DNA of 64,000 bases from Pavona decussata (Eukaryota), in assembly GCA_977016875.1 (NCBI GenBank), contig CDRNST010000102.1:806001-870000 (forward strand), in the 5' to 3' direction. A model generated the notes under the pieces. It did no database searches. It worked only from the letters and a program-made list of their open reading frames with translations, and was not told where the DNA came from. A program made the translations under genes and the position numbers. This document shows, one piece after another, positions 10,001 to 47,800 of this stretch. Numbering within the stretch: position 1 is the stretch's first letter; every line of letters begins with the position of its first letter.

Positions 10001-13000
10001 TCACCTTGACAGTGTCCCTTTAAGAAATAAGAATTTCGCGGACCACCCCGAGACGGCACAGAACGCATGCGCAGCAGTTAAAGGAGACGCCGTCTACAAG
10101 AGGTCAATTAATTAATTAAGAAAATACTCCATCTCCATCTAAAACTTAGTGCCATCAATACAAAACTAAAATAACAAACACGTGTTGAAAACGCCTTTGG
10201 TTTTCGTTTCGCAGTGGAAGTGGTCTGGTCAGGAATTCTCCAAAGTAAGCTATAATGTCCATCAAACCGCCGATTCTTCCTCGATCGCGTACGATGGGTC
10301 TGGGTTTCGTAGCGGTAGCAGCAGAACTGGCAGTTTTAAACACAGGTACAGTGCAATGTAGTTTTGATAGAGCCGTAAACTTTGACACAACGAACATCCG
10401 GATATCACAATTTATAACCCACCGCGTGATTAATTTCCGCGCGTCCACTTTGGACAAAACGCCTTGGTGGAACAAAATTGGACGGCGGTTGTCAGACGAT
10501 AACAGTCGGCCGATTTTTTTCGACGACAAATTAAAACAAAGAAAGGACGTCACACTTTTAGGTCTTAGTTGCAATCCAATGACAGTTTGGTAAGTGATGT
10601 ATCAAACACGAGACACAGTGTTTCAGCTGATCACATATCACACCGAGAAGAGAGTTGGAAATACGATGCGTAGCGGAGTATTTTTTTGACGACTTTCGAG
10701 GTTTTTGATATAAATTGTGATAAAACACTGTGACGAGTGTTTGATATTATTTCTCAAACAAACTGAAAACAGCCCACGTCGAACTGTGTCTTGTTCATTA
10801 CCTCTATATTTGCTGGCTGAGAACACAGAGCTAATCCATGATCACGCTGGCGTGAACTTGTGGCTGGATATCTATAGATTTATGCATGCAGAACCAGACG
10901 TCAAGCATAGTTGCCAAAACCTCTTGCACAGTGAGCAGCAGTAAAGAATTTACAAAATACCATAATCCACTGGGGAAAGTGTTAAGTGTTGCAAAACGCT
11001 GCCAAGTTTAGCCCAAAATGATGAAATAGTGTTTTAAAGGTATAAGGAAGCAACTATTGGATTCGGCTTTCCCATTTTAGCAAGAATTATCAAGGCCAAG
11101 GTTTAACTTGTGTGCCTTAGCCGATTACTGCTTTAGCTTCTCTCGGAAACTAAGGGACTCCACGGGACCCTACGGGACCATAACAAAGCTGGATTGGGAT
11201 AGGAATATTAGCTAGCACGGGATTTCGGGACGAAACGAATATTAAATTTGAAAGCTCACATTGGACTTTCCGTAGGTTCCTTGCGCCAGGTGTGTATTAC
11301 TATGCGGGCAGCGGATCTGTTTTAATGAAAGGAGTCATCAAGGTGCTTCCAGCATTCAGAACACAGACTGGACCAATCAGAATCAAGAGAGAAGGTATCA
11401 CATAAATGTTTCATTTTCATTATCGACTGGACGTAATCCAGTAAAGGGTGACCATTCAAATGAAAGTTACTGACTGGAAAAATGCTTTTCTTTGCAGTAA
11501 AATATGAATCTGAGTTTGGATTTTGTGCATGAAATCCCGGAGTGTGGTCATTCAAATGGAAGCTACTAGGCAGCACTTTCAAGAGGGGCTGTTTATTACG
11601 TAGTACAAGGCGGTTCTAATTTTTTGAGTGTACGGATAAAATTATAAAGTGTGAACATTCAAATTGAAGAATCTGGTTACCGAGCAGTATTTCTTTAGCG
11701 TACTAGTTAGTTTTCAATGTTTTGCGATATTCTTTCTTGCCATGAGCCCCAGAAATCATTGATGGCTAAATAGCAGTTTTTTGTCCGACTAAACAAACAT
11801 CACTCAACCCTGCAATTCGTATTGATGACTTCCAAATATAGCCTTCTTCGTGATCAGTCTGGATTCTCAAAACTCACAACAGCTTTTTATGATTATGATT
11901 AGCATTTGCTCCACAAGCACGCGTTGGCAATAATCATTCCATATCCAACAAGCGCTAGTGGAATAATTGTTTTATTAAAAACAGGCGACCAAGATTATTG
12001 CTAGATCTCGCTGATTTCGCTTTGCTAGAACAACTAAAGGACAATTTAATGGTCGCTATTTCTCAGGCATGGTATAATGGTTCGTATACCATGGCCGCTA
12101 CAATTATCCAGTTTTTAAAAATTATGATATTATATTGCATAGTTTATATAGGGTGGCACCCTATATGATCGTAAGTTAGCTGCACGCCCTTTACGGCACG
12201 CTTCATACCCGTTTCTGCTGTGTGTATGAATTCCAATTTCCTCATCAAGTTGTCTGTGATTAGCCAAATGTAATAACCTTGAACTGTTTTGGGAAAACTG
12301 AAATCCATTTCGTCAATACTGTTTGCTTTTGCTTAGGGTATGAAGCACGTTACAATCTCACTTCGCTTCCAAGCTCCTCTCCTAAATGCCAATCTGGGAG
12401 AATTGACGCTGTTGCTGGCTGCAGCTCTTCGTCGTCAGCTGAGAACTCAGGTCGGAGCTTTACCTATTCCCCGTGTAGCACGCCTCGAGTGTTCTCCGTT
12501 TTACCTCCTCGAGGAACGAGCGGGGCTGTTATTACAATTCGCGGGAATGGCTTTAGTGATGAATCATGCCACAACAAAGTGACTTTCACCTCGCATGTCT
12601 GTCAGGTTATCTCCTGCAATGAGACCACGATCACTTGTCAGCTTGGTACAGCGAAATCTCCACCCTCCGGTGAGCAACTTGATGTGGCGGTGAAAGTACT
12701 TAACAGAGGCTTCGCGTTCGTCAAAGCAGCTTCGGGTGAAACTGCACAATTCACGTTGAAGCCGAGTATAACTGCAGTGTCACCAAGTAGCGGTTCCCAA
12801 GCGGGTGGCACTCGACTCACGATATCGGGCAATGGGTTCAGCGAGACTACTGATAAAAATATTGTGCGTATTGGCGGAACCATTTGTGACGTTGTCGACT
12901 CCAGGTTCACCAGCCTTGTATGCGTTACACGAGCCTCAAACACTTCCCAGTTGCAACACGTCAACGTAACAGTTAGTGGTAGTAGCGGCGAGTGTGTTGC

Positions 13001-16000
13001 CGCTAACATTGCGGACTGTCAATATACATTCGCGTCCGACAGGACCCCAGTGGTGATCACAAAGACCCCGATTAGCATTAGCAGTCCTAACACAGAATTT
13101 CGATTTATAGTGTCACGGCTTCCTTCCGAAACCTCCGATGTGACGGTGAAAGTAGGTAACGCAATATGCAGGGTGACAGGGCTTGACTCTTCGTTACTCA
13201 CGTGTGAGATTACAGGAGCGGTGGCTGGAAACCACAAAATTGTGATCCACGTGTCAGGGAAAGGAAATGCTCAGTTTGATAGTGGTGCGGCAGACGTTGT
13301 TAATAGTGAGCCGAGAGTGTCCTCGGTCTCGCCATCACAGAGCAGCGTTAATGGAGGCTTGACCGTAACTGTCGGTGGGAATGGATTTGATCCAACGCCA
13401 GGAAAAACTAGAGTGACTATCGGAGGTGCGCCTTGTAAGATTGTAAATGTAACACATGGAGAAATCAAGTGCGTGACACCACCACACCCCGCCCAAGCAT
13501 CAGTAACATTACAAGTAACGGTTACTTCGGAATCTTCGCGTCGTCGCAGAAATGTGGGAAGCTCCTTCCCAGCAGCTTCTATCGCTTTTACCTTAGCCCA
13601 GACCCCTGAAGTAACGTCAGTTTCCCCTTTAACAGGGAGAGGCGGCCAAGCGTTGACTCTCTCTGGAAGTGGTTTGGAGCCGTTGCCGTCGCACGGCGAA
13701 GTTGTAGTTCATATTGGGGATGTGCCATGCACAGTAACCAGCTCGTCGGGAAGCTCTGTTGTTTGTGCGCTGGCTGCACACGCCGCCGGTTCAAACAGGG
13801 TGGACGTGATCGTACCAGGTAAAGGAAGAGCTACTTCAGGACTTTCCTTCGTGTACACCTTAAGCATAACCGGTGTTAATCCCAATGAGAGTGGCTTCGG
13901 TGGCGGGCGCCTTCTTATGTTGCAAGGGTATGGATTTGATAACTCAGCTGTGATCACGATTTGCGGCAATCCGTGCATCATTAGATCCAATCACGCTACG
14001 ACAACAACACAAATATCGTGCGAGGCGCCCATGAATCCTAATCACGCGGCAGGAGTCGATCAACAGTGCGACGTGGTGGTAACTTTGAACGGCTTAACCT
14101 CTACACTTGCGAATGGTTTTACTTATAAAATCGCGATGACCTCGAGGATAACCTCCATCGCGCCACCCCGGGGAGGGAGAGGTGGGGGAACATCTCTCAC
14201 CATCCGTGGCACTGGTTTCAGCAGTACACAAAATGATAATGTGGTGACTATAGACGGTACCAGCTGCACTGTCACATCCGCTTCTTCGACTGAAATTGTG
14301 TGCAGGACTGGAAATCACAGCAGGACGATTGAGACGAGAGTTCGAATTGATGTAGGGGAGAATGGCAAGGCCCTGGACGATGGAGGATATTTCTTTTACG
14401 TGGACGTTTGGTCGTCGCCATACACATGGGGCAACAAACCCCCTCCTGTAGAAGGTCAGCAGTTTTTTTTTGTTTTTTTTGTTTTTTACATTTTAATCGC
14501 AACAGAGAACGTTTTTAATTAGAAGTGAGCCGATGCAATTGGTTTTGGTTTAAAATGTTGGCACTTGATAATTTCAGCGCTTTAAGTATGCTGGGCGTTG
14601 TGCATAGTCAGCAGACTTAAGAAGGAAAGTAGAGAAATACCAAAACTCTCAAAGACTGAAACAGTTAAAAGAAAAAGCAAAAACTGTTCATATCCTAAAG
14701 GCTCACATTGCCACAACGCACCATTCACCAGATCTTTAAGTCTAAAAGCACTAAACCTAGATAGCTTAAGCTAATTCAGGTGTATACGCAGGAACAGGTC
14801 TTATAGTCTTCGTAGGTGGCCAGGCGCCCACAAGGATGTAACTGCAGGAAGGGCGGCCGTCAGTTGAACGCCTTTAGAGTAGCTTCGATTCACTGAAAAA
14901 ACTTTTTTATTCCCACTCCCAGTTGTTTCCCAGTTGGGTTAACTTCTGATGGACTACCGTCCCATCCAAAGGGTAGAAGTGATACTCTAAGTCACTTCAT
15001 ACCGGGTATTCTGTCAAAGACTACTAAGCTTCCTATTCAGGGGGGAGAAGTAATAATTCAAGTTAATTCATGTTGGATATCTTGTGATGGACTTGTATCC
15101 CATCCAGGGGGTAGGTGGGGGGGAATACTCCTAGTTGCTGCAGTTTACAAAAACCGAAGTAATGTGACCCCGTGGACCACCATATCTCCTTACTATCGCG
15201 TTTTTCTAAGCTATTTTTTTTCTCATCTACAGGAGCCGTTATAAACAAAGGGCAAACAATTTTACTTGATCAAGACACGCCCGTCCTCAAATTGCTTCTG
15301 ATTCAGGGAGGAAAGCTCATTTTTGACATGGAAAAACCTTCTCTTCACTTACAAGCGGAGAATATTCTAATTACCGATAATGGAGTTCTTCAGGTAGGAA
15401 CAGAAGATAAGCCGTTTCCAGGTAATGCGACCATCACTTTGCATGGACACGTTCGATCTAAAGAGATACCAGTTTTTGGCACCAAAACACTTGCGCTCCG
15501 CGAAGGAACACTAGATCTTCACGGTCTACACGTGCCTATCACGTGGACGCATTTAAGTTCCACAGCAGACGTCGGCACCACTGAACTTCACCTATTAAAA
15601 GCGGTCACGTGGAAACCTGGAGATGAGATCATTCTAGCACCAACTGGAAAATCACAGCGCGAGTTTGAAGAACTTACTATCACTGGTGTTAGCAACGGAG
15701 ATAAAACCCTGCATATTACACCAGCCCTTAGATATAAGCACATCTCAATTGTTCAGACTTTTGATGGCATACACCGCGTGGAAACGCGCGCAGAGGTCGG
15801 TCTGCTGACGCGGAACGTGCGAGTGCGAGGCTCGGTGCAATCTGAGTGGACGGAAACAATTGAGTCTTGTCCTGATGAATTCGCACCAGGACAGTTTCAA
15901 ACCCAAACCTGCTTTCAAGGAAAGTTTGGCGAGGAGATTGGAAGCGATGAATTTGGCGTTCAGATTATGATCCATGCACCTGAGGAGAGTAAGAATTTGG

Positions 16001-19000
16001 TGACAGCTAGGTTCAGCCACGTGGAGATCTCGCACGCGGGGCAAGCATTCCGTCTTGGTCGTTATCCAATTCATTTCCATCTTAGTGGTGACGTGACTGG
16101 ATCATATGTCCGTGGCTGTGCAATACATCATAGCTTCAATCGAGCCATCACAATGCACGGCATCCATAATCTTCATGTGAGCCGCAATGTCGTTTTTAAC
16201 GTCCGCGGAAATGCTTTCTTCATGGAGGACGGCATCGAAACAGGAAATGTGGTCGAGTTTAACCTTGGAATATTTGTCATCGCTTCTTCATCCGCGCTAA
16301 ATGTTGATATAACTCCAGCAACATACTGGGTTACAAACGCCAATAACACCGTGAGACATAATGCGGCCGCTGGCGGCAGCCATTTTGGGTTTTGGTACCA
16401 GATGTTTGAGCACCCGGATGGCCCTTCCTTTAGAAGTGATTACTGCCCCAGGAATGTTTTCATGCATGAATTCTTCAATAACTCCGCTCACTCCTTTGGC
16501 CGCTATGGTTTGTGGATTTTTCCGACTTATCATCCTTTGGAGGGAGGGCGTTGCAACTCAAAAATTGCGAAGCCCGCGGTATTTGGTCGATTCCTTACCT
16601 ATAACAATATGCGCGGAGCAGAGGCTGTCGAAATTGGGGCCGTCCAAATGAAGGACTTTCTAGTGCTTGACAATGATATTGCTGGAATAGAGTACGTATT
16701 TGGAGGCTTAATGGACTCTCCTAGAGGGGGAGCCAGGATTGTTAACGCACTCATCGTTGGCCACAGTCAAGCAAGCGAGGGACTGGAACTGAAGATCAGC
16801 AGTAACACGCGATGTACGGAGTCTGGTATCAGGCTTCCACAGTTCTCTAAGCTAGTTGTAGAAAATGTGACCTTTGTGAACTTTGACCGTTCGGGATGCA
16901 CCTGCTACACCACCTGTGCGCAATGTTCAGAATTCAAAAAGAGAGGTGGCTGGACTACACATACGTCGAAGAATCGTTTTGTGAACGCTCCTCGCCGTAC
17001 GGCCTTTCAGTGGAATCACGAAGCAGTTATACTTGATCTGGATGGAAGCTTTACTGGTTATGTAAATGGAAGCGTTGTGCCGACTAATGCAAACCTTCCT
17101 CCCCAGCATTGCACCGTCTACCCGCAATACAGCCATGGTCCTCACAATGGGAGCGTCTGTGATTCAACTCTAAAGTTCAGGAGATTTGCGTTCAACAATG
17201 TTGCGCCATCTTCTCTGAAAAGCAAAAATGTTTTATTGACCAACGAGCATGGTACTGATGTGGTGCCGTACTGCCTCAAATGCGCCACTCACCCTGAAGG
17301 CTGGTTGACGACTGTAATCTTAGGCAGTTCATACACCATCGCATTTGAAAATGCCCAACATATAACAAACATAACCTACTCTGGCTTGTTCTATGACCTG
17401 GAGGAACTAGATCATGTTTGGATTAGTCACAATTTAACGCAGAAACCCGATCATTTTACGGTGACTGGGAAATATCAAAACATGACCGATGTCGTCCCAT
17501 CTGCAGACGCACAGCACGGCAACTGGAGCTTTGTGAACGAGACAAAAGAGTTCACGTACATAGCGTCCGGTAAAAACGGTGTGCGGACAATAAACAACAA
17601 TATTGTACCACGCGCAGTCCAACTTCGCGTATTTCGCTGCTTCTACGAGGACTGCATTATCCCTGTGCCGCCCCCTCCACCGGAGGGCAGACCGGCGCAA
17701 TTTCGGCGTTGGTCGATCGCCGATGACTGGGAGGGAAGTGAGCCTTTGTATGGCGGTTATGGTAGAAGATTGCCTCACAACGGAAGCAACGTCATGATAC
17801 TGCCAGACTGGTACATGTTGGCGGATATACCGCTGCCATATTTAAACAAGCTTCTGGTGTACGGGACTCTTGAGATTGAGGACATGCCAGGAATGGTCAT
17901 CAATGCTTCCATCATATTCATCAGTGGAGGTCTGATCGTAGGATGGCCTGACAAACCGTACCTTTCCAATATACTAATAACTCTCCAAGGCGACGTGAAC
18001 AGTGAAGAATATCAGCCCACACAGGGTGTTAATGTCGGTAGCAAGGCCATCGCAGCGTTCGGGTTCCTGTGGCTTCATGGCAGACCGAAAGCTATCTGTT
18101 GGACGAAACTTTCAGTAACAGCGGAAGTCGGGGATGTTTACTTGATACTAGTAGAAGCAGTGGACTGGAATGTTGGTGACGAGATCGTCCTCACGTCGAC
18201 TACCGTTAAGCCAGAGCAGACCGAAAAGTTCATTATAATAGCCATCTCACCAGACAGACAAAATCTGACACTGAACGCGCCTCTCCGGTATAAGCATATC
18301 GCAGAAACTCACACGGCCGGGAACTGGACATACACCTTAGCAGCGGAAGTAGGACTGCTGACCAGAAATATTGTAATAGAAGGCGCAGACAACCCTTCTG
18401 GGGCCTGGGCCGCGTCGTTTGGATGTCGTGTTCTGGTTGTGGGAAGCGGCCGGATTGAGTACGTGGAGATAAGGCGTTGTGGACAGGAAGGATGGATTGA
18501 TGACTTTGATCCTAGGTGAGAAATATTTTTTCAGCCCTGTGAGCCCTGTAAACTGACCGACAGCTAGTTTCGCCTCTGAACTTGAAGAAAGTAAAGAAAG
18601 CCACCAACAAAAATTAAGTATCTTAAGCAAATTCTCCCAACTAGTAAGTTAAGAAATGGATGGAGAACAGTAAAGAGAATCTGCGTGTTGATATCACACC
18701 TTAAAAAATTCAATTCAGCTTTGGCGAAATTAATCAGATAAAGTTATATTAATAGGCCATTTTCATGATGGCGTCATTTTGCTACAACTACCAGAATTCA
18801 TTTCGTTTTCCTTTTCAAATTCAGCAAAGAATTATAGCACTAATTAGCATGAGAAAACAAAACCAGAAGGATTCTGGTAGTTTTAATAAAATGACGCCAA
18901 AGTGATAAATTATGTCCTATTGAGGGGTGAAGGAAAATATTAAACCACTTTTTATTCAGCTATTCTCTGTAAATGTTATGAACCTGCTTTATCTTCTTAG

Positions 19001-32800: not shown

Positions 32801-35800
32801 AGTTCTCATTGTCGCCAACGGTTTACCAACATGTCTTCTCAAACTCATTAATAATTCAAAAGCCAAAGACAAAGGAAGTTATGCACTGTGACGTGTTTGG
32901 ATATCTGATGAAAAACTCCGTTTTGGCATCCTCAATTTCCCCTTCAAAATCAGTTTGTTTGAGAAGTTATATCAAACACTCGTCACAGTGTTTCATCACA
33001 ATATCAAAAACATCGAAGTTCGTCAAAAATACTCCGCTACACGTCGTATTTTCAACTCTCTTCTCGGTGTTTGATATGTGATGAAACACTGTGTCTCGTG
33101 TTTGATATATTACTTGAAACTAATACGGCGACGTTAACATTCACACCCTTGTCACTGAAAGTAGAGTGTATAATCACACTATTGTCAGTGATAGAACTAT
33201 ATTTGTGGAGTAAAGTAGTCTTAAAGGAGAAGTATCACAAATTTGATGTCATTTCAAAACCCAAAAATGTTTGCCTGACAACAGAAACAAAAAATAATTG
33301 TCTAGTTTTGTTATAAATTATCACCCTAGTGCAATAAAACTGTCGATTAGCGCCCCTGCCCAGAGACAGAGTAGGTTGGAATGGATTGAAACTTGAAAAA
33401 TGTTCGGCTAATGTTTTTCAAGTTTTCGTATTTTTATTTTCAAAATGCACCAGAACAGGGGACGAGTTGTTCCTGTCAAGAATTGAGTTGATTTCTCTCC
33501 TCTCGTTGTTTTAAAATTATTTTGTAGCAAAGTGAAGGTCTTACTTCACCATTTTTAACAAAAGAGGTCAAAAACCCCATGAGACTTCCCCTTTAACTGA
33601 TAATCCATTGCATATTTGACAACAGGAGTAAACAGGACAACATCGATCGAGGAGCTTAAACAAGTTGGCGACAACTTAGTGGAAAAGGTACAAACAGGTG
33701 AACTCGCACAGCAAGCGCAACTGGAAGTCGTGTCGCTGTCCTTGTCTGACCCTATCCCTGAACCAGTTGACCCGACCGGCGGTGTCCGAGCCACTAATGA
33801 GACTGGTAAATAGCATAACTTCATTCTCGTTAGCTAAATTAGTTTCTTCAGCCAGGGCTATTTAACACAAATAAAAGTTAAAACAGTTTTACGTCTAGCT
33901 TTGGCGCTGAAGAAATCTAGTAATGTTTGGTACAATAGAGAGATTTAGAATTACGACAGAAATGACCACGTGACCATGTTTACCCTACATTAACTTACAT
34001 TTGCCGCTCGCTGTTTTCATTTTCTCAGTAATTGGGTAGTTTCCCGTTAGCATGAAAGGTCAGAATTATTTTGCACTATTCTTATCTATGTACGTATTTT
34101 TTCAACTCAAGAAAATTAACGCAAGGGTCTCTAGTTATTTACTCCAAAAAACAGGGGGGTTGTCTATCATCTAAAGATGTAGCCCTAACGTCGTGTTACG
34201 ACCGCAACATTCCAAAAAACTTTTGAGCAAAAATGGCACGACTTTTTATTGCCTCCTGGAGACTGCCTATAGTTTTATAACTTTTCGCTTATTAGACACT
34301 TCATTTCTGTGCCAGGGCCTTTTTAAATATTCTCTCAGTTTTAAAAAAAAACTGATAACTTCACTTTGAAGGAACTGGGCACTAGTGAAAATTGTCGTTT
34401 ATTTTAAAAATTAAAGGAATTTTTGAAAGGCCCGGGCACAGAAATGTGCCTAACACTCTCAAAGTTTTAAAACTACGGGCAACCTCCAAGATGCAATAAA
34501 AAGTGGTGTCATTTTTGCTGGAAAGTTTTCATGAGTGTTGCGGCCTCAACAGGTCACGTGACCTCATTTACATACATCGTGCATGTCAATGTGATGACAT
34601 TTAGAAGGATTTAACGCTTCTGAAGTCTTACGATGTTCTGGTTAAATCCTCAGAAGATAGACCACCTCCTCACTTTTTCCAGTTAATAACTAGACACCCA
34701 TGCCTTAATTTTCTTGAGAAGGAAACATAAGCGTGAATTTCACGTTTGCCGTTTGCCGCTTACGTTTACGGCAAACGGCAAACGTGAGATACGACCACGT
34801 GACCATGTTTATCCTATATTTGCCGCTTGCTGTTTTCAGTTTTTCTGTCAAATCAAGTAGTTTTGCGTTAGTATCAAAGGCCAGAATTAGTTTGCACTGT
34901 TCTCATCTTTGTACTCTTTATTTCAAGAAAACATAAACGCGGATCTCACGTTTGCTGTTTGCCGTAAACGCGATTCTTAATCTCTCTACTTAAATGTACC
35001 CCGGATGTAAGGCCACTGTTGCAGTTGTTTTGATATCTCACAGCTGTAACCCCTCCCTTCTCAGAGATCAGGAACAAGACTATTGTTATATGAAATAAAT
35101 GTGATGGTATTTTTCCAGCCTGGTGAATGAATGAGAATGATGTATTATTCTAGAAAGTGACACAGGCATAGTCGGAAAAAAGAAATCCGAGTGCTCCTAT
35201 CAGGAGTCGAACCTAAGACCTTCCGATCACTAGTTCGGATGCTCTACCACTGAGCTACAGGAGACTCGTGGGAGCTAAGGCCATTAAACTAGGTTCATGG
35301 GACAAACATCCTGCATACTGCAAGGATTTGGATGTCGAACGTGTGGTATATGAAATAAGTGTGATGGTATATAAATTATCCAGCCTGATCAATGAATGAG
35401 AATGAATGTATTATTCTTATTATTTCGGTGAATAAGAGAACACATCATGATCACAAAATGTGGGTTAATATTAAAACGAGCTATATTACGCTTACCATGA
35501 ACATAGAAATTCATCAAAAAACTTCATCGAGAAAAATTGAGTCCTAACTATACTCCATTCGCCGCCAGCGGTTGGATCTGGATGTAAACATTGAACTTAA
35601 GTGAGAATCGACAAAGCTAACTCATATACACGGGTCATAAAACATATACGTCTTAGAATCATCGAGGTAATGTGAGTTTCTCTCCGTTGTACGGCATTGT
35701 TACACTGTACGTTTTGTTTCACGACTGTCCTAAACAATTTGTCTCTCAAACAGTGTTGCTTGAGAAGTTGCACATGGTTATCTCCGCCTGTCTCACGTTT

Positions 35801-38800
35801 CTCTTTCTTGCAGGTGGACCAAACATAACAGACAACTCTACTCTGCGTTATGACCAACTACAGGCACAACAGCAGGCCGAGGCTCCCAGTAACCTGTTCA
35901 GCTTCCTCATTCCCAACAGACTGGAGCTCTTTACCGAACCGAACGGAGGTAACGAGACTGTTCCCTTCACTATCCAGCCAAAACTCAAGCTGGTGGACAT
36001 CGATGGCAAGTTAGTGACAACCTTGGGTCATGGCTCGTTAAGCAACTGGACTGTGAGAGCCAGCATACTGAACGGAACAGGAGACCCCATGGCGGTGCTA
36101 GAGGGTAATGTCTCTGTAACGATTGTGGAAGGCTGGGCCAACTTCACTGATCTGAGCATCACTCATAATGGTACCGATTATAAGTTACTGTTTAACGTCA
36201 GTAAACCTGCGGCTTCTCAGTTTAACGCCACTTCGCAGTCGTTTGAAGTCAAGGAGAGGATTTTGTACTTCACCGTTTCCATTCAGCCAGACGACGCTAA
36301 TGAAACCGTTAGCTTCGGAAAACAGCCGAGAATTGAAGTCCGCGATGCTGCCAACGGAAAAATCGTAGACAACACAGGTTGGAAAGGAAGAAGGTGGCTG
36401 TTCACGGCTTCCATAGCTAACTCAGATGATAACAATGGGCATCTAAACGGAACTACAGAAGTGGAATTTGTTCAAGGTATTTTTGTTTTATTACTCACTG
36501 TACCCCTGGGGTGGGAGCATTCCCTATAATGGATTATACTGGGAGGGTCCACCTGGAAGGGGCACTGTTTACAGGCTGAAGGAATATTAAAGGGCGGAGA
36601 TTTCACGAGCCGAAGTAAAGGAAAAGGCAAGGAAAACTGTCAATTAGGTATTTAAAGGGGGCTTTCAAAATATCTCTAAAAGACCAGCCTACCGTAGGTA
36701 TATGAAAGGGGTACCGTTTGTTATGAAACGTGTATGAAAGGGTTACCTTTTCTTGTAACAAGTTCATTGCTATGTAGTGCTAGGAAAAGTGGTTTTAAAG
36801 ACAATTTGGCCTTTAGGGTTTTCTTGTGCCACTTATGAAAAAATTCCCCTCGGGTTTCCAAAGTTCTACTTATTATTGATGACACAGTCCCTATGGACGT
36901 GCTCTCGGTGTTTCAAACTGTTTTTCTTGTCAAGTCGAACAAACTTCGAGACGAATTATTCCCTTTAATAACAAACCCTACCTGAAAATGAGCCCTTACA
37001 AATCTAACATAAATCTAATGTTTGTGGTAGGTGTCGCCCAGTTTACAAATCTCAGTGTGGACATTTCCGGAGACAACTACATCCTAGCGTTACAGGCGTC
37101 AACTGTCCCATGGTCCCGCTACGCCTTTAGCGAAAACTCCTCAGCGTTTAACGTTTCAGAAAGACTGCTCTACCTTAAATTGGTTCAACAACCTGGCGAC
37201 TGCAATGATACTGTTATCTGCGGCAGTCAACCAATGTTGGAGGTAAGAAATGTATTCCCGGACACTATTGTCGACAACATCGGCTGGAGGGGAAGAACGT
37301 GGCAGATCAACGCAAGTATGGTTGGCGTGAGCAATTCTGTGCTTAACGGTACTGCGCTGCTGTCGGTACCAACATCAGGGAAGGTACAGTTTCACGACTT
37401 AAACTTCTACGACGTCGCACAAGGATACCAAATAAAATTCACTGTTATAACTGAGCCATCATCTTCATATTCTGGATTGTCCGTGATCTCGGAAACTTTC
37501 GACGTCTCCCCACGCAAATTCTACCTCGAAGTGATAACACAGCCTGGCAACGCCAACCAATCGGAGATCTTTGGTGTTGCCCCAGTAGTAGAAGTACGAG
37601 ATGTAGGAACGCGCATGCGCGGACACCCTCTGAAAGGTGATTGGTCAATAGCAGTGTCGCTCAAACCGTCACCTTTGAATGGAACACTGAGTGGAGAGCT
37701 AAACGTGACCGCTACGGACGAGAGGGTGGAATTTGGCAACTTGTCAATCTCTTTCTATGGTGTTGGATATGAACTTGTTTTCGTATCTAATTATGGACAC
37801 ATGGTAAGTAGAGGAATAAATGTACAATACTAAAGAAAATTAATTAATGCACCTTGAAGTGAGCGCGAATTTTCAAAAATAAACGTTAGTGTACCTTTAA
37901 TTTCTTGTGGCGTTATTTCCCGCGACCTAATTTGAGAACGGTGCCTCCTAATACAGCTGTATTTTTGGCGCCTTTTAAGACTATAGAATAAAAATGAGCG
38001 ATATAAAGACTGAACGACGTTCCAATGACTCCATGTCATCATTATCAAGTTCGAAATACATGGTGAAATTGATTATATATATAGTATCTAAAGTGTGGAA
38101 ATATTTAGGGAATAAACAAAGGAGTTAAAGTATTCATAACAATTGAATACTTTAACTCCCTTGTAAACTCCATAAATATTTCTACACTTTAGTAGTGGGC
38201 CATTTTCTTTTTGAATGCAGAATTTCCAATGCACTCTTTCTCGAAATAATACGAAATCTGAAAAAGCTAGCTTAATTTCCTTCATTTGGAGTCAATTGAC
38301 TGTTTTTTTTTTCTTAAATGTAAACATTTTTACAAGAAATAAATACCATCTTATTTCGTCCCCCATCTTAGTTGGATATTACAGTGTAATACATGGTCAA
38401 AAAAGAGGTCCTAAAAAGATGCTGTTCTGGTGCTTTTTAATTGTAACATCTAAATTCCAATTCAATACTTACAGCTAGTGTGCTTCTTTATTCTACAGGT
38501 ATACTCTCAGACCTTTGAAGTCAAATATGTAAATGACTATTCCCCAGTATTTGAGCCTTCAAATGGCTTTTACAACGCCACTATCTCTGAGGACGCTTCC
38601 GTCGGTGTATTTGTAACCACAGTAACGGCAACTGACCAAGACTCAGGTTCCCAAGGTGATGTTTTCTACTCCATTGTGGGTGGAAACACTGGCAACAAGT
38701 TCACTGTTGATGCTGTCTCGGGAAATATCACATCAATTGGAGAGCTTGACCGGGAAACAACTGCAGTATTTACGCTAACTGTGCGAGCGTCCGACGGCGC

Positions 38801-41800
38801 GGTGCCAGAAAAAGTACGGTATACGGACGGCACGGTGAAAGTTGTCATCTCCGATGTTAATGACAACGCTCCGTCATTTAACACGTCATCAATTGTCGCC
38901 AACGTTTCAGAGGATGTCAATGTTGGTGGCGTCATCATCACGCTTCAAGCTAATGACCCGGATGAGGGATTGAACAGTGAACTTCGTTATTCAATAACAA
39001 GCGGAAATGACGCTGGAATGTTTACTGTGGACAGTGTATCAGGGGAAGTAAAAGTAAATGTGTCATGTGATCTGGAAAAAGTGCCTAGGCCCGATTTAAT
39101 TTATTCCTTGAACATATTTGTTCAAGACCTTGGAACTCCAGAGAGCCTAAACACGAGTTTAGTGCTCAATATCAGCATCACTGCTGCCAATGAATTTACC
39201 CCGCAGCTTCTTCATGGCTCCTCGTTCAACTTTAGCTTTGCTGAGAATGCAGCTGTTGGTGATGGTGTTGTTGTGGTGCAGGTGAATGCTACAGACCAGG
39301 ACTATGGTGACCAAGGAAGAGTGTCTTATGTTATTAATTCAGGTAGGAATAAATCAATACGGCGGGGTTTTTTTTCTATTTCCCGCGCCCGATCTAGGGC
39401 TGCACAAAAATGCAGTTATTTGGGGTTCTTGGTTTCAATCCACAAATATGGTCAAAAGAAACCTATTTTCAAAGTATGGTACCTTCCGAAAGACCTTCCA
39501 TCAAGATTGGTCTCTTGGGGGATCCCAAGCCCAGACTCGATAGGGTGCAAAAGGCAGAGGGATCCTGGGTTGCTCGGTGTTAATCAACTATTAAAAAGAA
39601 AGTTAGTGGTCCGTCGACTCTTGAGACACCACAACTGGTCTCCTTGGGGTACCCGAGCCTGGATTTAGGTTGTAAAAAATGCCCTAACAGGACACAGGGG
39701 CTTCTGGTACTCAGATTTATCACGGGTTTCCTGCGAAAATGACTAAATGAAGCGTCAAGTGTTTAGAAAGTTCAGTGTGTCGTTTCTAGGTCACTGAAAC
39801 AACAATAAACTATCGTTATCAAGTTTGCCAATATTTATACTTGTGCTCGTGTTCACAGGTAACGACGAAGGCAAATTCAACCTTAGTGCCTCATCTGGTG
39901 AATTGAAACTCGTGGCTACACTCGACTACGAGACCACTCCGTCTTACATCTTGGTGATACACGCGCGTGATAATGACCACGCAGGAAACGTGAAGTTCGC
40001 GGTCTTCATCGTGAACGTGAACGTCTTAGACATGAATGACAACGCCCCTGCATTCTCTCAATCCCAGTACGAGGTGAACGTCGCAGAAGACGCGGTTATC
40101 GGCTCCAGTGTTTTCAAGTTCCTTGCCTCTGATCCCGATGGCGGTTTGAACGGACTCGTTTCTTATTCGCTAGATTTCAGCAATGCCAGCGAGTTCTGGA
40201 GTCTTAACTCGTCTACTGGTGAACTCACTGTTAATGGTAAGATAACGGGAAGAAAGAAGGGGTGATGTCGCGAAATCCACCTTGAAATTGTCGATTTTGG
40301 CATATATTTCATAGCTTAGCAATAAAAAATCTAAGAGTGCTTTCCATTTGCTAGAACTGGCCAGCCAGATCAGTCAGTCGTTGATGAGCTGGTACTACAA
40401 AATCTTGAAAAATAAACACTCCGAAAATGGCACACCGCCGCTATTTTGAAGAAATTGGAAGGACTAGAATAAGACTAAAATAAAACTTATTCTTCAAATT
40501 GGTGCATTCCGTTTACGAACTGACCGATGTGGCCGGCCAGTTCTTACAAATGGAAAGCGTCCTAGGAAATTCTTCTGTTCCTGCAGACTTTTTTGCTACT
40601 TTCAACTGGCGCCTTGATTAACTTCTAAGCTTGTATCTGATAATTAATCGAGTTAGCCCATCTTCGAACAACCGGTAGGTAGGGATAGTGGGAAATTTAA
40701 TTTACTCCCTTTTTCATGATAGATTATGGGGCAGGCAAATGCTTCATGCCAGGATCCTTGTACATCAACTCTAAATTTATATGATACAAGCATCAATTAC
40801 CATGCTTACTGTTAAAGACCTTCTAGAAACAATTCGACAAGGGTGGTCATCACTTTAAGTTGTAATCATACCTTTACTAAAATAATCACAATCCCTGTTT
40901 CCTTTTATTAGCCTCACTTGACATGGACAGCAGACACATTTCCACATGGACGCATACGTTAATCGTTATAGCAAAGGATGCCGGAACACCAATGCTTCAC
41001 TCCAACACTACACTTATAATCCGCGTTCTCCTTACCAACGAATTCGCGCCAAGCTTCGCAGCTTCAGATGTGTCAGTGACGGTCAGTGAAGACATTGCTG
41101 ACGGAAGCGTTATTTACCATGCAAATGCCACTGATGCGGACTTTGGATCAGACGGGGAAATACGATACAGTATTACAAGCGGGAATAACGACCTGAAATT
41201 CTTTATCAATTCCCTCACCGGTAAAATAACCACTCTTGCAGCACTGGACCGTGAGTCTCAAGGCATATATAACCTTGTTGTCGAAGCAAAAGACCAATCA
41301 CAGTCAAGCAAAAAGACAGGAACAACAACTGTTCATTTGAGCTTGAGCGATGTGAATGACAATGCTCCTAGCTTCGCCAACAATTATTACTCTACGGGCG
41401 TAGATGAAAATGTAGCAGTTGGTGGCGAAGTCTTCACCGTTAGAGCCACAGATCCTGATCTTGGAACAAACGGGGACCTTGTCTATTCTATTGCAAGCGG
41501 GAATGACCTGGGTTTCTTCAGCATTGAGTCAAATCAAGGCATCATTCGCGCTGCTAAGACCCTGGATTTAGAGACTCAGAGCCATGCAGCTGGCCGCACT
41601 TACCACTTGGTCATATTTGTTAAGGATCAAGGCTCCCCACATTCCCTTAATAACTCTGTGCCTGTGACTATCACTGTTCAAAGTGTCAATGAATTCCCTC
41701 CCGTCTTGGAACACAGTGATAACCAAGTCGTGGAACTCATCGAAAACGCGACCCTGTCTTCCGCGGTGTTCGATGTGAATGCAACTGATAACGATTATGG

Positions 41801-44800
41801 AGATGAGGGGGTTTTGACTTATTCTATCACTGCTGGAAACAGTTTGGGACATTTTACCATTAACAATGTCACAGGTAGGTGGAGTAACCTTGTGGTTATT
41901 ACAAATTGTAACTTAAACGCAACATCCAGTTTTTTATGAACCTCTTGTCAGTGGTATGTATATAAAGCAACTCTTTTTTTTTTTAACCAATACTGATTTT
42001 TACAGTATCTGTCAAAATATCTGCGCGCTGATTGGCTCGTAGTTATTGTCTACGGTACAGACAATAGATCAGATGTAACGCGAGGGGCTTTTTCAACGGA
42101 AGTTAAAGCCAATTCGGCTTGTACTTTTCCCATGTTATTGTAACAAAAATCGACGGCAGTTTTCTACGGTCTATACTCCTATAGACCATAAAATAACGCC
42201 ATAAAATGTTCAAAACTTGTAGGGCAAGTGAAACCATTCCACTTGAGTTTTGAACATTTTATGACGTCATTTTATGATCTATAAGAGCATAGACCATTGA
42301 AAACTGCCGTCGATTTGTTAAATACAACATCTTTTGATCACAAACTATTATCCTAGCGGGTGTACTACCAAAAAGTACTTATACTCATAATATTTTATTA
42401 TCGCTAGGCGTCATCAGATTGGCGAAGGAGTTGGACTTTGAAACAATCAGTCAACACAACCTGGTAATCACAATAACCGACAACGGTCAGATTTTGAACC
42501 AAAGAAGACAAGTCACTGTTAATGTCCAGGTACGAGTCATCAACATAGACGACGGTGTCAAGTACACAGCCCAGGTCCGAATGTTACAGACATACATTAC
42601 CTCTCCAGTCAATCCTGCTAGTTTGGCTGGCGTTCCTCAGAAGTCTGCTTTGGAAATACGTCTGGTGTACGAAAACGGAACCTCGGTGGACATAACTAAA
42701 GAATTAAACCGCTACACAGTGGATGGCACTTCAAAATCCAACAACCTCTTTAGTGTCGCGACAACTGATGGCACTCCTTTTGTCGTTGCTAACAGTAACG
42801 GTGTGACTGGAATAGGCCAACTTCTTGTTCACGTGACAAACGTCCAGACTGTCGAGGTCAATGTAACCGTCGTAGGGAGCAGCTCCCTTAGTATCAAATC
42901 TGTGACGTACCCTGGCGCTTCTGAAGTCAGTGAACTCAAGCAAATTATCCCTGGACTATTTCAGAGAGTTTTGCTCAAAGTTCTTCTTAACCTGACAAAT
43001 GATCACCAGGTAGACGTTTCCATCTCGGTGAATACCTCGTTTGTTTTGACAAATGCACAGCAAGTTGGAGGTAACTTCCTATTTGGACCTGTTCCACGGA
43101 ACCTTTTCTCGATCTCAGGGAACGGCTTGACTGGCATCGTTTCAATTCAAGTAGCCTTTGCTCAGAGTCTTTATGCGAGTGTCAATCTGACACTGTCTTC
43201 AACAGTCCTTGAAATAGTCGCAATAACCCGTTTTGGCTTGGAAAATGTCAACACGACTCTGAGTGGTATTGCGATGGTGACAACCGCATCGCCGTTTGCC
43301 GAGATGCAAATGAAGGATGGCTCGGTCCATGTTCTCGACAACTTTACAATGTACAGTGGCTTGCTCAGGTTCAACTCTAGCGACCCCGATGTAGCATCAG
43401 TAGATTCAGCTTCTGGTGTTGTTACTCTGCTCTCGGACAGTAGTTCCCCTGTAACCATCACAGCTTTTGTTCTTTCAAATACAAACATAACAGCGACAGT
43501 TGCGGTCTACTGCAATCTGGATCCCGGTGTTGGTGAAGTCGACATCGGGGCCAAAGAAGGGCCAGCTATTCCTTTGCTAGCTGTAAATGAAATTTGGCGA
43601 TTGCCTATAAGGATGAACCCTGGAACACTCGGCATATTAGCCGTGCACGTGGAACTTTGGTTCAGCACTAGCGATGTACGGGTGGATAACGTCATTACCG
43701 ATCTTCCATACTCATTGTCTGGGAATACGGTACATATATTCGGGCCCATCACAGAATCTAATGCACTCTCAGAAAACATCGCCGAGGTTGTGCTGACATC
43801 TCTAAAAAATGGTGTTCCTCAAGTCAATTATCATGCCTTCAGAACAGTTAATAAAGCGCTCACACCCTTGCCTACTAAGTCAGTAAAATCTTGCTCAGAT
43901 GTCGTACGAGGTGATATCGACTTAGATTGCACATTTGACATTGTCGATGTCGCTTTTATCAATGCCTACATTGCTTCCTCCAAGGCTCAATTCACTGACA
44001 GTCTTGGAGCACAGATGAAGGCCGTGTCCTCTTCTCAGAAATCAGCGATGGATGTCAACTGGAACGAAGCAATAGAGAATAACGACGCCATTTTCTTGTC
44101 TTTCATCTTTCTGAAAAAGGCAAAGTTTGTAACAGAACTGACTTACCAGCTTCCCAATCACGAAAGTAGTTCCTCGGACAAGTGTGGCTTACAACTAGCA
44201 ATCAAACTAGCTAACAAAGATGGGTCACCAACCTTGTCTTCGCAAACAGAAGCATACTTCCTCGTTTCGCATTCTGCCGTAAATGTTGCTGAGCAGTTAA
44301 GCAAAACAACGTTTACCGCAGGCACTAAAATAACTGTGCAGGGAAGCACGCCTATACAAGGGCTGATTAAAGCTAAATATGAAGACGGCAATTTCTTCAT
44401 TGCTACTGAGAAGTCAGAGCTAGAAGCAAGCGACGTTGGAGTCTCCATTGTTCAAGATGTTTCCTTCAATGGACTGAAATATATTGCTTCGATGTTTTTG
44501 GCCTCCAATCTTGTATCGACCGGTGCAGTAGATAGTACCTGGGCGAAACGTCAGGCAAGTGACGGCTTCGTACCACAGCGGAAACTACAGTTCTCGGAGT
44601 CCACGGCAAGATGTGTCGATCCGCTTGTCACGGTCAACGTGGAAATTATTTTTGATGGCGATTATGACAAGATCGTCAAGGGCAAAGAAGAGCAGTTTGA
44701 GACGCGTTGCGTTACCACACTATCAGAATATTACCCCGAGACAACTATAACAAATTGCAAGGTCAGAAAAGGAAGCATTTTGGCTTCATTCAACATGACA

Positions 44801-47800
44801 ATGCCTGGATCAAAACAAAATACAACACTCGCTAAACTATGGGAGGATGTTAGCAAAGGTATGACACTCAATTTCAATGGAGCAACAATGACGACCTTAC
44901 CACGCATGCAGGTTGATGGAAAGGATTATTCCAAGACACCTGTGAAGACACCTGAAGATGAAACGCGAATGCCCGTCTACATCATCATCATCGCTTGTGT
45001 GGCAGGCTTTGTCGTGATTTTGATTGTTGTAATCATAATTTACTGCGTCTATTGGCGAAAAGGAAGTACTGGAAAAATCAATCCGTCACCGCCCAACACA
45101 CCAGAGTACAGCGGAAAAGGGCATTTAGAAGTAGAGTCCAAATACGTCACACACAGTGCGAGTCCATCGTTGGTTTCGTTGCCGGCCTGGACTGAAGGCA
45201 CCCCTCAGTTTAAGCGTCCTAGTCCCTCAATGTTAAGGGGCAATGTGGAACCAGCATTTGAAGATAGAGAGGAACATCTCCCGGATTCTCAGGTAACTTC
45301 CTTTTTCTGTTATGAATCTGGGGAAAGGTCATTCCCTAAATGCCATTGACAAGGAACTCACCGCACCCTTTTAATGTTAAAATGCTTCCTTTTAAATATT
45401 TCATTGTTTTCAGGCTTTTAATTCTTTGTTTTATAATTGGTACCTGCCAAAGCGGTACAACCATACCCTATCACCAATCTATTAATACGACCAAAATTAT
45501 ATGGTCTATACGTTTCTTTTTTGAAATTTCTCTGATTAAGAGAAGTTCCCGGTTTGACACAGGGTGCATGTTTTTCCACGCTTGATACCGGTCAAAGTTT
45601 GGCCACGCTTGAAATCAGTTTTACTTATTTCACTGCGCTTGAAATTGGTTACATGTTTACCCGCGCTCCACAACCATCTATGTTTGTTTCCGCTTGATAT
45701 AGACTGTATTGTTTCTTTGCTTGACACTTTTTGCATGTTTAATCTACGATAGACACCATTTTTATGCTCTTCCGCTCCAATTGGGTGATTTATCGCGCTA
45801 AACAACTCTGTTTTTCAGCGGTCGAGTTTTAATTCTGAGATTTTATTACGGCAATTTGTGTTTGCGACCATTGGCCTCTGTACATATTGATTGTTTGTCT
45901 ATCGCATCTTTTCACAGAGACCGACACTATCAAAGGAGGATTCAGGTGACCTCCCAAAGACTCTTCTAGCGTTCCCTGTGGATTCAAATATAAAGCGTCT
46001 CCTAACTCCCATACTTGAACAAAAAGCAATTGTGCCACAATCGCCAGCCTCTTCTCCTGTCGACCAACAACCGCCAAGTGAACCTGATACAGAGTCGACG
46101 GATCGTGAAGAGTCTCCTGACATTGCCTCGACAGCGGCCAGTGTTCAAAGCCCAGCAGTGTCTCCATCTGGATTATGGCCACACTGTGAGGATGCTGGAG
46201 AGACCGAAGCGTTGGACGATACATTTGATGAAGATGGAATGCCCGAGGGTATCAGACAGGAAGCTCTGCTACGTCGACGAAGAGCATCGTCAATAGATTC
46301 TGATCATGAACGAACCTTCTTTTCTGAGATGCCAGGTGTCTTAACGGAACAGAGTAAGTTTTTGGAGTTTTATATTATTCCATAAGCCTTTCCTGTCACC
46401 AGACTGGCCGAAAAAAAAATAGATAGTAGGCACAGGGGTGCAACAGAAAACTCGCGCCGGCGCTAGGAATGACTTGCCTTGACGTGATCCTCCTCGCACC
46501 ATGTGGCACGTAAGGCTGAAACCAGAGTTTTCCATATCTCTCAGTCGGTTGCAATATTCTCGACTTCATTCCATGTCTAAGATGTTGTTTTCATTTCGGC
46601 CGCGATGTCCTCCTCCATGTTTCATCTGCGCAGTCTTTCCTGTTTGATGAATAGTCCTGACGTTTCATAGTAATATGGTAATCTGCTATTATGGGGTTGC
46701 TAGCCCACGCGAAATCTTTTCATTACTCGAGATACTGAATCTCTTTAAGGAAAACAAATATGATGTTTAAACGTGGTTTTATTGTTCTAAAGCTAGCGCA
46801 AAACTCCGCCGTAATTCACTTACCACTAGACAGTGTCCTTGTCGTTGAAACCTGAACCTCAAATGTCAAACGGGACGGCAGGATTGGAGTCACTTGACGT
46901 TTAGACGTTTGCAGTTTGCGGGAAACGAGGAAAAACTTCAATCTTTAAGTCCCTATTGTTATTTTTCTTCCTGCAGGCTCCAATGTACAGCGAACTAAGA
47001 TGCAAGTCAAGGTAGTACGCCCCAATCCCGAGTTGGGCGTCCTTGCACACATGGCCGGAGTAGTCGACGTCAATCTATCCGGGACCTTAGATGAAATGCG
47101 CCAAGACATCAACCGTGTGTTGCCTGGATACCTCGGCTCAGTTAGATATTTGCTGTTATCACGCAATTTCAAGATTATTGACCCAAGGACAGAGAATCAG
47201 CTAGTTGTATCGGCGGTATATAAGAAGTCAATTTATGTGAAAGTGTTCCACGGTGCAGGTGAGTGAGCTGATTAACAATTGTTTACTCCTTAGAAGCGCT
47301 TTAACTTTAATACAGGACCGGTTGGTGATATCAACTTTTCACGTGTTTTTCTTTTTTAACCATTTTTGAATATCCCAAAGTGTTTCATATATATTAAAAG
47401 AAAAGTTCAAGGCATGGCCTTAGCTCCCACGAGTCCCCCACGAGTCTCCCGTAGGTTCGACTCCTGATAGGACCACTCGGATTTCCTTTTTCCGAGTATG
47501 CCGGATTCCTAAAAATATAGTATCTTGAAATGGCTCCTTTCCAAAATTGCAAAAAGACAAGTTGTTGTGAACTTCCCTGTATAAAATAAGCTCTCTGTTG
47601 TTGGCGTATATTAAAAACTAACACTGCCTTTCATTTGTCGTGACAGAAAACTGCGAGTATTTCTGCCAGTGTGGCAAGGTGGCGTATATCTGGTGCCCAA
47701 GGTGTAACGTTCAGGGGTACTGTGGGGAAGATTGTCGCGGGCGAGATGAGAGCGAGCATGCAAAGCTGTGCAGCAGTAACAGAGAAAGAGCCATGCAGGG

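Follow-up and report, generated by a model that had tools for sequence, protein, structure and literature searches.

The window analyzed here, by which we mean the whole stretch of DNA under study, comprises 64,000 nucleotides (nt) of the cnidarian Pavona decussata (GenBank assembly GCA_977016875.1, contig CDRNST010000102.1, positions 806,001 to 870,000 of the forward strand); its GC content is ~40% throughout and it contains no N. Our subject is a large coding exon that very probably carries, within the polypeptide of a cadherin-type receptor, a cohesin followed by a dockerin. Bacterial dockerins need two calcium (Ca) ions for folding, after which they bind cohesins very tightly, and the cohesin-dockerin contact is among the strongest known protein-protein bonds. 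The exon, the two modules and the linker between them are given below in window coordinates, with amino acid (aa) numbers counted along an open reading frame (ORF) of 976 codons at 42419-45349 (+ strand).

42408..45292, + strand: large coding exon of ~961 codons that carries all modules, with a GT..AG intron on each side
43526..43858, + strand: cohesin module (aa 370-480), compact at ~110 aa, placed by AlphaFold2 (AF2), structure matches and the family profile
43859..43909, + strand: linker of 17 residues with an invariant Cys492, from the orthologue alignment
43910..44119, + strand: dockerin module (aa 498-567), consisting of a Ca loop (43913-43948), a helix, two short helices, a second Ca loop (44051-44086) and a helix

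The limits of the exon come from transcripts. Contigs from three public runs (X1, X4 and X6) join 41874 to 42408 and 45292 to 45918, skipping introns at 41875-42407 and 45293-45917 that have GT..AG ends and whose removal keeps the reading frame (checked); the exon is therefore 42408-45292. The second intron, 45293-45917, is covered by a DNA run. Since the free ends of the same spliced contigs match 40206-40235 and 46978-47007, the order in the mRNA is ...40235, 40911-41874, 42408-45292, 45918-46354, 46978... The mRNA measures at least 15.7 kb, as one transcript contig reaches 15,708 nt. Pfam searches, which were done exon by exon, showed that the exons directly upstream encode cadherin repeats (E 4e-46 and 8e-57); these cadherin exons (38478-41874) are spliced to the cohesin-dockerin exon, which itself reaches a membrane helix. 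An initial annotation, made from the letters alone, had placed the module pair in an animal membrane receptor, and the transcripts bear this out: the cohesin-dockerin exon is expressed and spliced, and is part of a very large single-pass receptor of the cadherin type.

The dockerin module

The residues from which the initial annotation read a dockerin signature are present in the 976-codon ORF where it had put them: the stretch that opens with RGDIDLDCTFDIVD begins at 43907, and the closing FLSFIFLKK terminates at 44119. Loop 1, DIDLDCTFDIVD (aa 499-510, nt 43913-43948), has the ligands D/D/D/D/D at positions 1, 3, 5, 9 and 12, and loop 2, DVNWNEAIENND (aa 545-556, nt 44051-44086), has D/N/N/E/D at the same positions. 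The pattern D-x-[DN]-x-[DN]-x3-[DNE]-x2-[DE] occurs twice in the ORF, and both matches are the dockerin loops. In 20,000 shuffles of the ORF the mean was 0.007 matches and two matches never occurred, so the loop pair is real and not a chance pattern.

Comparisons made with orthologues and with a family of 135 related units (both described below) turned the signature into an assignment. Pfam Dockerin_1 (PF00404) matches 19 of 22 orthologues (best 6.5e-5). When searched against the PDB, the orthologue profile found nine sequences, all of them dockerins or dockerin-carrying enzymes (best 5m2o_B, E 0.0022), and the profile of the 135 units reached the dockerins 4fl4_A at 1.5e-8 and 1ohz_B at 2.7e-6, versus 0.47 for calmodulin. 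Among the same 135 units, Dockerin_1 matches 58 (best 5e-10) and EF-hand families match three. The ligand positions 1, 3, 5, 9 and 12 are kept in 84-100% of the units, whose loop consensus is G-D-x-N-G-D-C-x-F-D-x-x-D ... D-x-D-x-N-G-x-I-x-x-x-D-A-x-F-L, and the leading Gly-Asp (G498-D499) is invariant in the aligned orthologues. A single-sequence search with aa 380-594 against PDB sequences returned only potassium-channel matches at chance level (E 0.06).

AF2, run on aa 485-850 with a 133-sequence alignment, gave a mean predicted local distance difference test score (pLDDT) of 94.8 and a predicted template modeling score (pTM) of 0.86, with pLDDT values of 88-98 over the dockerin (aa 485-565). 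The deeper alignment was needed, as an earlier run with 22 close orthologues had left the dockerin at 30-57. The model has no helix ahead of loop 1; from position 10 of either loop an exit helix runs on, and the segment separating the loops forms two short helices. The predicted arrangement is that of a dockerin and not of a four-helix EF-hand pair. Foldseek searches with the 366-residue three-domain model produced poor global overlays only, with root-mean-square deviations (rmsd) of 15-20 Å.

The cohesin module

For the region upstream of the dockerin, the initial annotation had offered a cohesin as its weaker suggestion, at about 43571-43886. The domain is upheld by the results that follow, but its start lies ~45 nt earlier and we place it at ~43526-43858. 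With a shallow alignment, AF2 folds aa 366-477 confidently into a beta sandwich (pLDDT up to 95) with eight strands of at least three residues; the cohesin fold is a jelly roll of nine strands. Cohesins make up nearly all of the first 33 rows of a Foldseek search with this stretch (E from 3e-4; TM score by target 0.5-0.58), and the top 25 VIA-align matches are all cohesins, with Z 9.8-10.8, rmsd 2.3-3.2 Å and 100-106 residues aligned. The next VIA-align matches are unrelated sandwiches of the pilin/adhesin type (Z at most 9.2), about one Z unit below, and because this margin is narrow the sequence evidence matters for the call.

The first 150 positions of the 135-unit profile match solved cohesins (4ums at 2.1e-5, 2xdh at 1.3e-4, 1g1k at 1.5e-4), and Pfam Cohesin (PF00963) matches 93 of the 135 units, the best at 2e-14. 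The orthologue profile reaches the cohesin halves of units in giant relatives with E down to 1e-10, and paralogous cohesins on another contig of the same genome (C36) exceed the Pfam cut-off at 34.7 and 26.8 bits. In language-model features, aa 375-575 fall with bacterial Cohesin/Dockerin clusters of ~200 aa (score 0.95, 195 shared features). Taking both modules together, we are confident that nt 43526-44119 encode a genuine though divergent cohesin, a 17-residue linker, and a genuine dockerin with two intact Ca loops.

Constraint and the cassette family

With aa 370-640 as query, a word-indexed search yielded 30 open frames that resemble the window ORF in length and share 55-94% identity. These orthologous frames adjoin cadherin exons on their contigs, and one of them lies on a Tara (coral-reef) metagenome scaffold. 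Conservation of both loops and of the helices that follow extends to 21 orthologues (55-94% identity), and residues unchanged in all 22 aligned sequences include G498, D499, D503, C504, F506, D507, D510, D545, V546, D556, A557, F559 and L560. The ratio of nonsynonymous to synonymous substitution (dN/dS), measured against an orthologue with 90% identity, comes to 0.15 over the cohesin, to 0.17 over the dockerin and to 0.29 over the exon as a whole; this close pair alone was used, as dS was saturated against a distant orthologue (L002). No other part of the exon is, by dN/dS, as constrained as these two modules.

More distant relatives proved to be numerous. An exhaustive search of 1.8 billion representatives returned 336, and in those of 3,000-8,000 aa, stretches matching aa 50-425 and aa 490-680 each recur several times per protein. 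Local profile searches resolved these into cohesin, dockerin and a further domain, the beta sandwich X described below, in constant order and about three times per giant protein; a dockerin lies within 330 aa after 94 of the 115 cohesins of the long relatives. The giant relatives also have cadherin repeats and Ig_TMEM132 domains, and the genes beside them (CwfJ, a mitochondrial carrier) are eukaryotic. Judged by these sequence comparisons, the BIG-like region, cohesin, dockerin and X of the window are one copy of a conserved, old eukaryotic cassette, and the pairing in relatives, together with the strongest constraint on the exon, points to the cohesin and the dockerin working as a unit.

The genome of P. 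decussata itself holds at least four such units: the one in the window, one on contig C37 and two on contig C36. The C36 units belong to open frames measuring 1,852 and 2,141 aa that also encode cadherin repeats (L005, 4287153-4290986; L006, 4296107-4299895), and Ig_TMEM132 Pfam families match the C36 gene as they do the giant relatives. In the single-unit paralogue on C37 (L009-L011, 1686637-1691177) the cohesin scores 22.8 bits, and an intron falls between the dockerin's two Ca loops. As the pair is a conserved cassette repeated in other genes, it is no one-off of the window receptor, and the surprise that it first presented is lowered accordingly.

One or two furin-type motifs, R-x-[KR]-R, and often two, are present in 74 of the 135 cohesin-dockerin linkers, where 0.03 would be expected per 45 aa, and both C36 units have them.

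Other parts of the exon and its surroundings

The exon encodes, in order, cadherin repeats, the BIG-like region, cohesin, dockerin, X, a SEA domain and the membrane helix. The parts other than the pair are as follows.

42422..42532, + strand: second, C-terminal half of a cadherin repeat, matched by Pfam Cadherin at positions 56-92 of the profile with E 9.5e-4
42566..43513, + strand: beta-rich region of ~320 aa (aa 50-365), probably Ig/BIG-like, preceding the cohesin in all relatives
44126..44521, + strand: beta sandwich X (aa 570-701) with an invariant Cys589, AF2 pLDDT >90, following the dockerin in every family unit
44576..44923, + strand: SEA domain (aa 720-835), from VIA-align, Atlas and AF2
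44975..45055, + strand: transmembrane helix (aa 853-879), a 27-residue hydrophobic run followed by RK, after which the cytoplasmic tail starts

The cadherin repeat at the start is split between exons: its N-terminal half comes from the exon directly upstream (40911-41874), which has three repeats (E 7.8e-57). The beta-rich region is the stretch most widely matched in the giant relatives (for example, aa 67-423 against P0036 with E 1e-85); on its weak Big_2, intimin, LigA and S-layer BIG signals, aa 50-365 probably form Ig/BIG-like domains. For X the searches made found no Pfam family, no Atlas cluster, no clear PDB fold and no language-model match, the structure searches having used the three-domain model, from which VIA-align and Atlas reported the SEA domain. 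Cysteines stand in the linker (Cys492, 43892-43894), in loop 1 (Cys504, 43928-43930) and in X (Cys589, 44183-44185), those of the linker and X being near-invariant. Given such near-invariant cysteines in linker, loop and X, disulfides may tie the dockerin to its neighbors.

The SEA assignment draws on several lines. VIA-align matched the SEA of MUC16 (Z 9.7, 9.4 and 8.7) and those of Trop2, Gpr126 and TMPRSS6, and the top Atlas match is a SEA cluster. The fold is an alpha/beta sandwich with G-S-[VI] at the beta2-beta3 turn: an invariant G785-S786-I787 (44771-44779) sits in the beta2-beta3 hairpin, between model strands 292-299 and 304-312. We take this hairpin with its G-S-[VI] to be the classical place of SEA self-cleavage, and by analogy the receptor may be cut there into two chains that stay associated non-covalently. 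The 11 N-x-S/T sequons are all found upstream of the membrane helix.

Several observations concern the wider gene and its introns. A splice from 46354 to 46978 was seen in transcript, and the exon that opens the frame MQVKVV... (46978-47266, + strand) therefore shares an mRNA with the cohesin-dockerin exon. Farther upstream, ORFs at 7343-18519 and 35672-37833 (both + strand) are fibrocystin-like, with IPT/TIG repeats, G8 domains and a CEMIP beta helix, and two more upstream ORFs of ~280 aa each have no Pfam match. The 15.7-kb transcript contig includes 10.6 kb upstream of 40911, approximately the summed length of the upstream ORFs. The TIG/G8 ORFs and the cohesin-dockerin exon may belong to the same gene.

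Within the intron ahead of the exon, contig depth over 41964-42351 is 20,000-87,000 in a DNA run (X15) and in the hundreds in RNA-like runs, and many short contigs stop there; elsewhere on the stretch the depth is ~33-43, and 0 on the upstream exon. The stretch 41964-42351 is a very high-copy repeat within the intron.

Discussion

The explanation that best accounts for these results, to which we would assign a probability of about 0.7, is a genuine cohesin-dockerin cassette in a cadherin receptor, Ca-dependent docking of the dockerin onto a cohesin being its less certain part. Under this explanation the dockerin would fold only with two bound Ca ions, like the adjacent cadherin repeats, and would then dock onto a cohesin. 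If its partner were the neighboring cohesin of the same chain, a compact force-bearing joint would result; if it were the cohesin of a neighboring receptor or of another cassette cadherin, lateral or trans oligomers could form. In the giant relatives the chain would be cut at the furin-type sites of the linker and held together by the cohesin-dockerin contact, for if those sites are cut, only a non-covalent hold keeps the pieces, and this contact is the obvious candidate. In the window protein, the SEA domain could be a comparable cleavable joint. Binding of any kind by the window pair itself is possible, though we would put it somewhat short of an even chance.

Comparison with solved systems supports the module identities and also marks where the pair diverges. 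With the type I pairs of cellulosomes (1ohz, 4fl4, 2ccl), the window modules share the cohesin jelly roll (Z ~10) and a dockerin of two duplicated Ca loop-helix segments with ligands at 1, 3, 5, 9 and 12 and a leading Gly-Asp. In contrast to those pairs, the window cohesin has ~110 aa instead of ~140, the dockerin shows a Cys at loop-1 position 6 and a longer spacer between its loops, and a single chain carries both modules, as part of an animal receptor without carbohydrate-active enzymes. Loop positions 10-11, which we assume to be the dockerin recognition positions, are Ile-Val and Asn-Asn in the window, whereas type I dockerins have a Ser-Thr pair (S45/T46 in the title of 2ccl). Non-cellulosomal tandems of bacteria and archaea likewise have a cohesin and a dockerin on one chain, over ~200 aa (Atlas clusters, 0.95), but are secreted prokaryotic proteins; the Archaeoglobus cohesin 2xdh and the Clostridium perfringens cohesin-like 2jh2 and 2vo8 are among the best structural matches of the window cohesin. 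Some non-cellulosomal prokaryotic cohesin-dockerin proteins self-associate.

Several results weigh against the proposed explanation. The window sequence scores 15.0-17.3 bits with Dockerin_1, under the cut-off of 22.9, and its ORF has no match to Pfam Cohesin, so that membership in the two families depends on profiles and a chain of homology. In 94% of the 135 units a Cys takes the place of the Gly that classical dockerins have at loop-1 position 6, and with a loop spacing of 46 residues in the window and its closest relatives and 36 in most orthologues, the spacer of the window dockerin is ~10 residues longer than in most relatives. The dockerin fold is an AF2 prediction, VIA-align and Atlas having returned only the SEA domain from the three-domain model. 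Furin-type motifs are absent from the window protein, including its linker, and from its coral orthologues, unlike the linkers of the giant relatives. Finally, the pTM of 0.86 for dockerin, X and SEA together may mean that the dockerin is packed on X and not free to bind.

This last point leads to the strongest rival, in which the modules are true homologues of cohesins and dockerins but serve only as a Ca-stiffened spacer, the dockerin being permanently packed on X and not binding a cohesin at all. We consider this unlikely on balance, yet it is the alternative to be taken most seriously. The prediction of dockerin, X and SEA as one rigid body fits it, as do the presence of X after the dockerin in every family unit and the near-invariant loop-1 Cys, which could form a disulfide with the Cys of X. 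A complex prediction of the cohesin (aa 366-483) with the dockerin (aa 484-580) returned no binding signal (score 0.31, mark 0.34); this was a single run without controls and argues neither for nor against binding. Dockerin-X contact alone, however, would hardly explain a strict one-to-one pairing of cohesin and dockerin over ~120 units under strong constraint, and furin sites placed exactly between cohesin and dockerin suggest a non-covalent hold.

Far less probable is the alternative raised in the initial annotation, that the modules capture cohesin- or dockerin-bearing microbial proteins, making the protein a host receptor for bacterial surface proteins. Bacterial cohesin-dockerin tandems are its nearest language-model look-alikes, and orthologues occur on coral-reef metagenome scaffolds, but nothing links the cassette to microbes. 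Partner modules are present within the same proteins and within one genome, and the cassette has been kept across deeply diverged relatives, which points towards an endogenous partner.

We give still less credence to an ordinary EF-hand pair beside a generic Ig-like domain, with a merely superficial likeness to dockerin and cohesin. The sub-threshold Pfam scores of the window and the pilin/adhesin sandwiches only about one Z unit under the cohesins would suit such a view, which is otherwise largely refuted: the family profile separates dockerins from calmodulin (1.5e-8 versus 0.47), Dockerin_1 is matched by 58 units and EF-hand families by three, AF2 places no helix ahead of loop 1, and on the cohesin side profiles match solved cohesins and Pfam Cohesin finds 93 of 135 units. 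Bacterial contamination or recent horizontal transfer, suggested by the mainly prokaryotic membership of both families, is refuted by the spliced transcripts, as the modules share one exon with a cadherin repeat, SEA and membrane helix, that exon is spliced to cadherin exons, its GC content matches the surroundings, orthologues in related genomes have the same exon, and paralogues exist in the same genome.

How does a cohesin-dockerin cassette in a cadherin receptor relate to animal proteins already described? Eukaryotic dockerin-like modules have reportedly been catalogued, to judge by the title of a 2009 study by Peer. In the literature covered here on dockerins in corals, cnidarians, choanoflagellates and TMEM132, only PMC6030884 was relevant, Nichols 2012 and Peer 2009 lying outside that coverage. 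Eukaryotic cohesins were once thought to be confined to the cadherins of choanoflagellates and sponges, the coherins (2012 work as cited in PMC6030884). The comparison with coherins drawn in the initial annotation is apt: by domain content the window protein is a cohesin-bearing cadherin of coherin type in the simple sense, with cadherin repeats and a cohesin in one membrane protein, and the cassette is common to giant cadherin-repeat proteins. It differs in being cnidarian and in having a single membrane-proximal cassette followed by SEA, and a dockerin right after the cohesin is not mentioned in the account of coherins given in PMC6030884.

TMEM132 proteins, which have been linked to hearing loss and panic disorder, also carry a cohesin, in the order conserved N region, cohesin, three BIG domains and membrane helix, and dockerin homologues are not detectable in vertebrates (PMC6030884). 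The window protein likewise has its cohesin in an animal single-pass protein of adhesion type, and Ig_TMEM132 families match its giant relatives and the C36 gene. It does not follow the TMEM132 domain order, however: its cohesin is preceded by a BIG-like region and followed by dockerin, X and SEA. The window ORF has no match to TMEM132 Pfam families at E up to 1, and Ig_TMEM132_6th gave a faint match in one of 60 upstream regions.

The SEA domain invites a further comparison, with the SEA joints of MUC16 and other mucins, Trop2 and Gpr126. These have the same membrane-adjacent SEA fold with G-S-[IV] at the cleavage hairpin, but the window SEA comes after a cohesin-dockerin-X unit and its cleavage is only predicted. 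Extending this analogy, we speculate that cohesin and dockerin, in cis or between molecules, form a Ca-dependent, force-resistant clasp, which would be a second, cellulosome-type principle of adhesion in early animal cadherins. In the giant relatives it would hold together chains that furin-type proteases cut precisely between cohesin and dockerin, and so act as a cleavable, mechanosensitive joint like those of SEA and GAIN, and the cohesin of vertebrate TMEM132 would be a remnant of it. As a whole, this extended proposal is doubtful, and we regard it as less probable than simple binding by the window pair.

To our knowledge, the cohesin-dockerin interaction has been studied almost solely in bacterial cellulosomes, and in animals attention has been limited to the cohesin half, in coherins and TMEM132. 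Three features may not have been described so far: the regular order of cohesin, dockerin and X, the Cys of loop 1, and the furin sites of the linkers. In P. decussata, an early-branching animal, a cadherin receptor has both halves intact and adjacent, and they are expressed and kept by purifying selection; across a large family, a cohesin is as a rule paired with a dockerin. The window thus offers a defined pair that can be cloned and used to test whether cohesins of animals bind dockerins. Such a pair could reveal whether the Ca-dependent adhesion of cadherins was at one time linked with a clasp of cellulosome type, and what the orphan cohesin of TMEM132 has lost.

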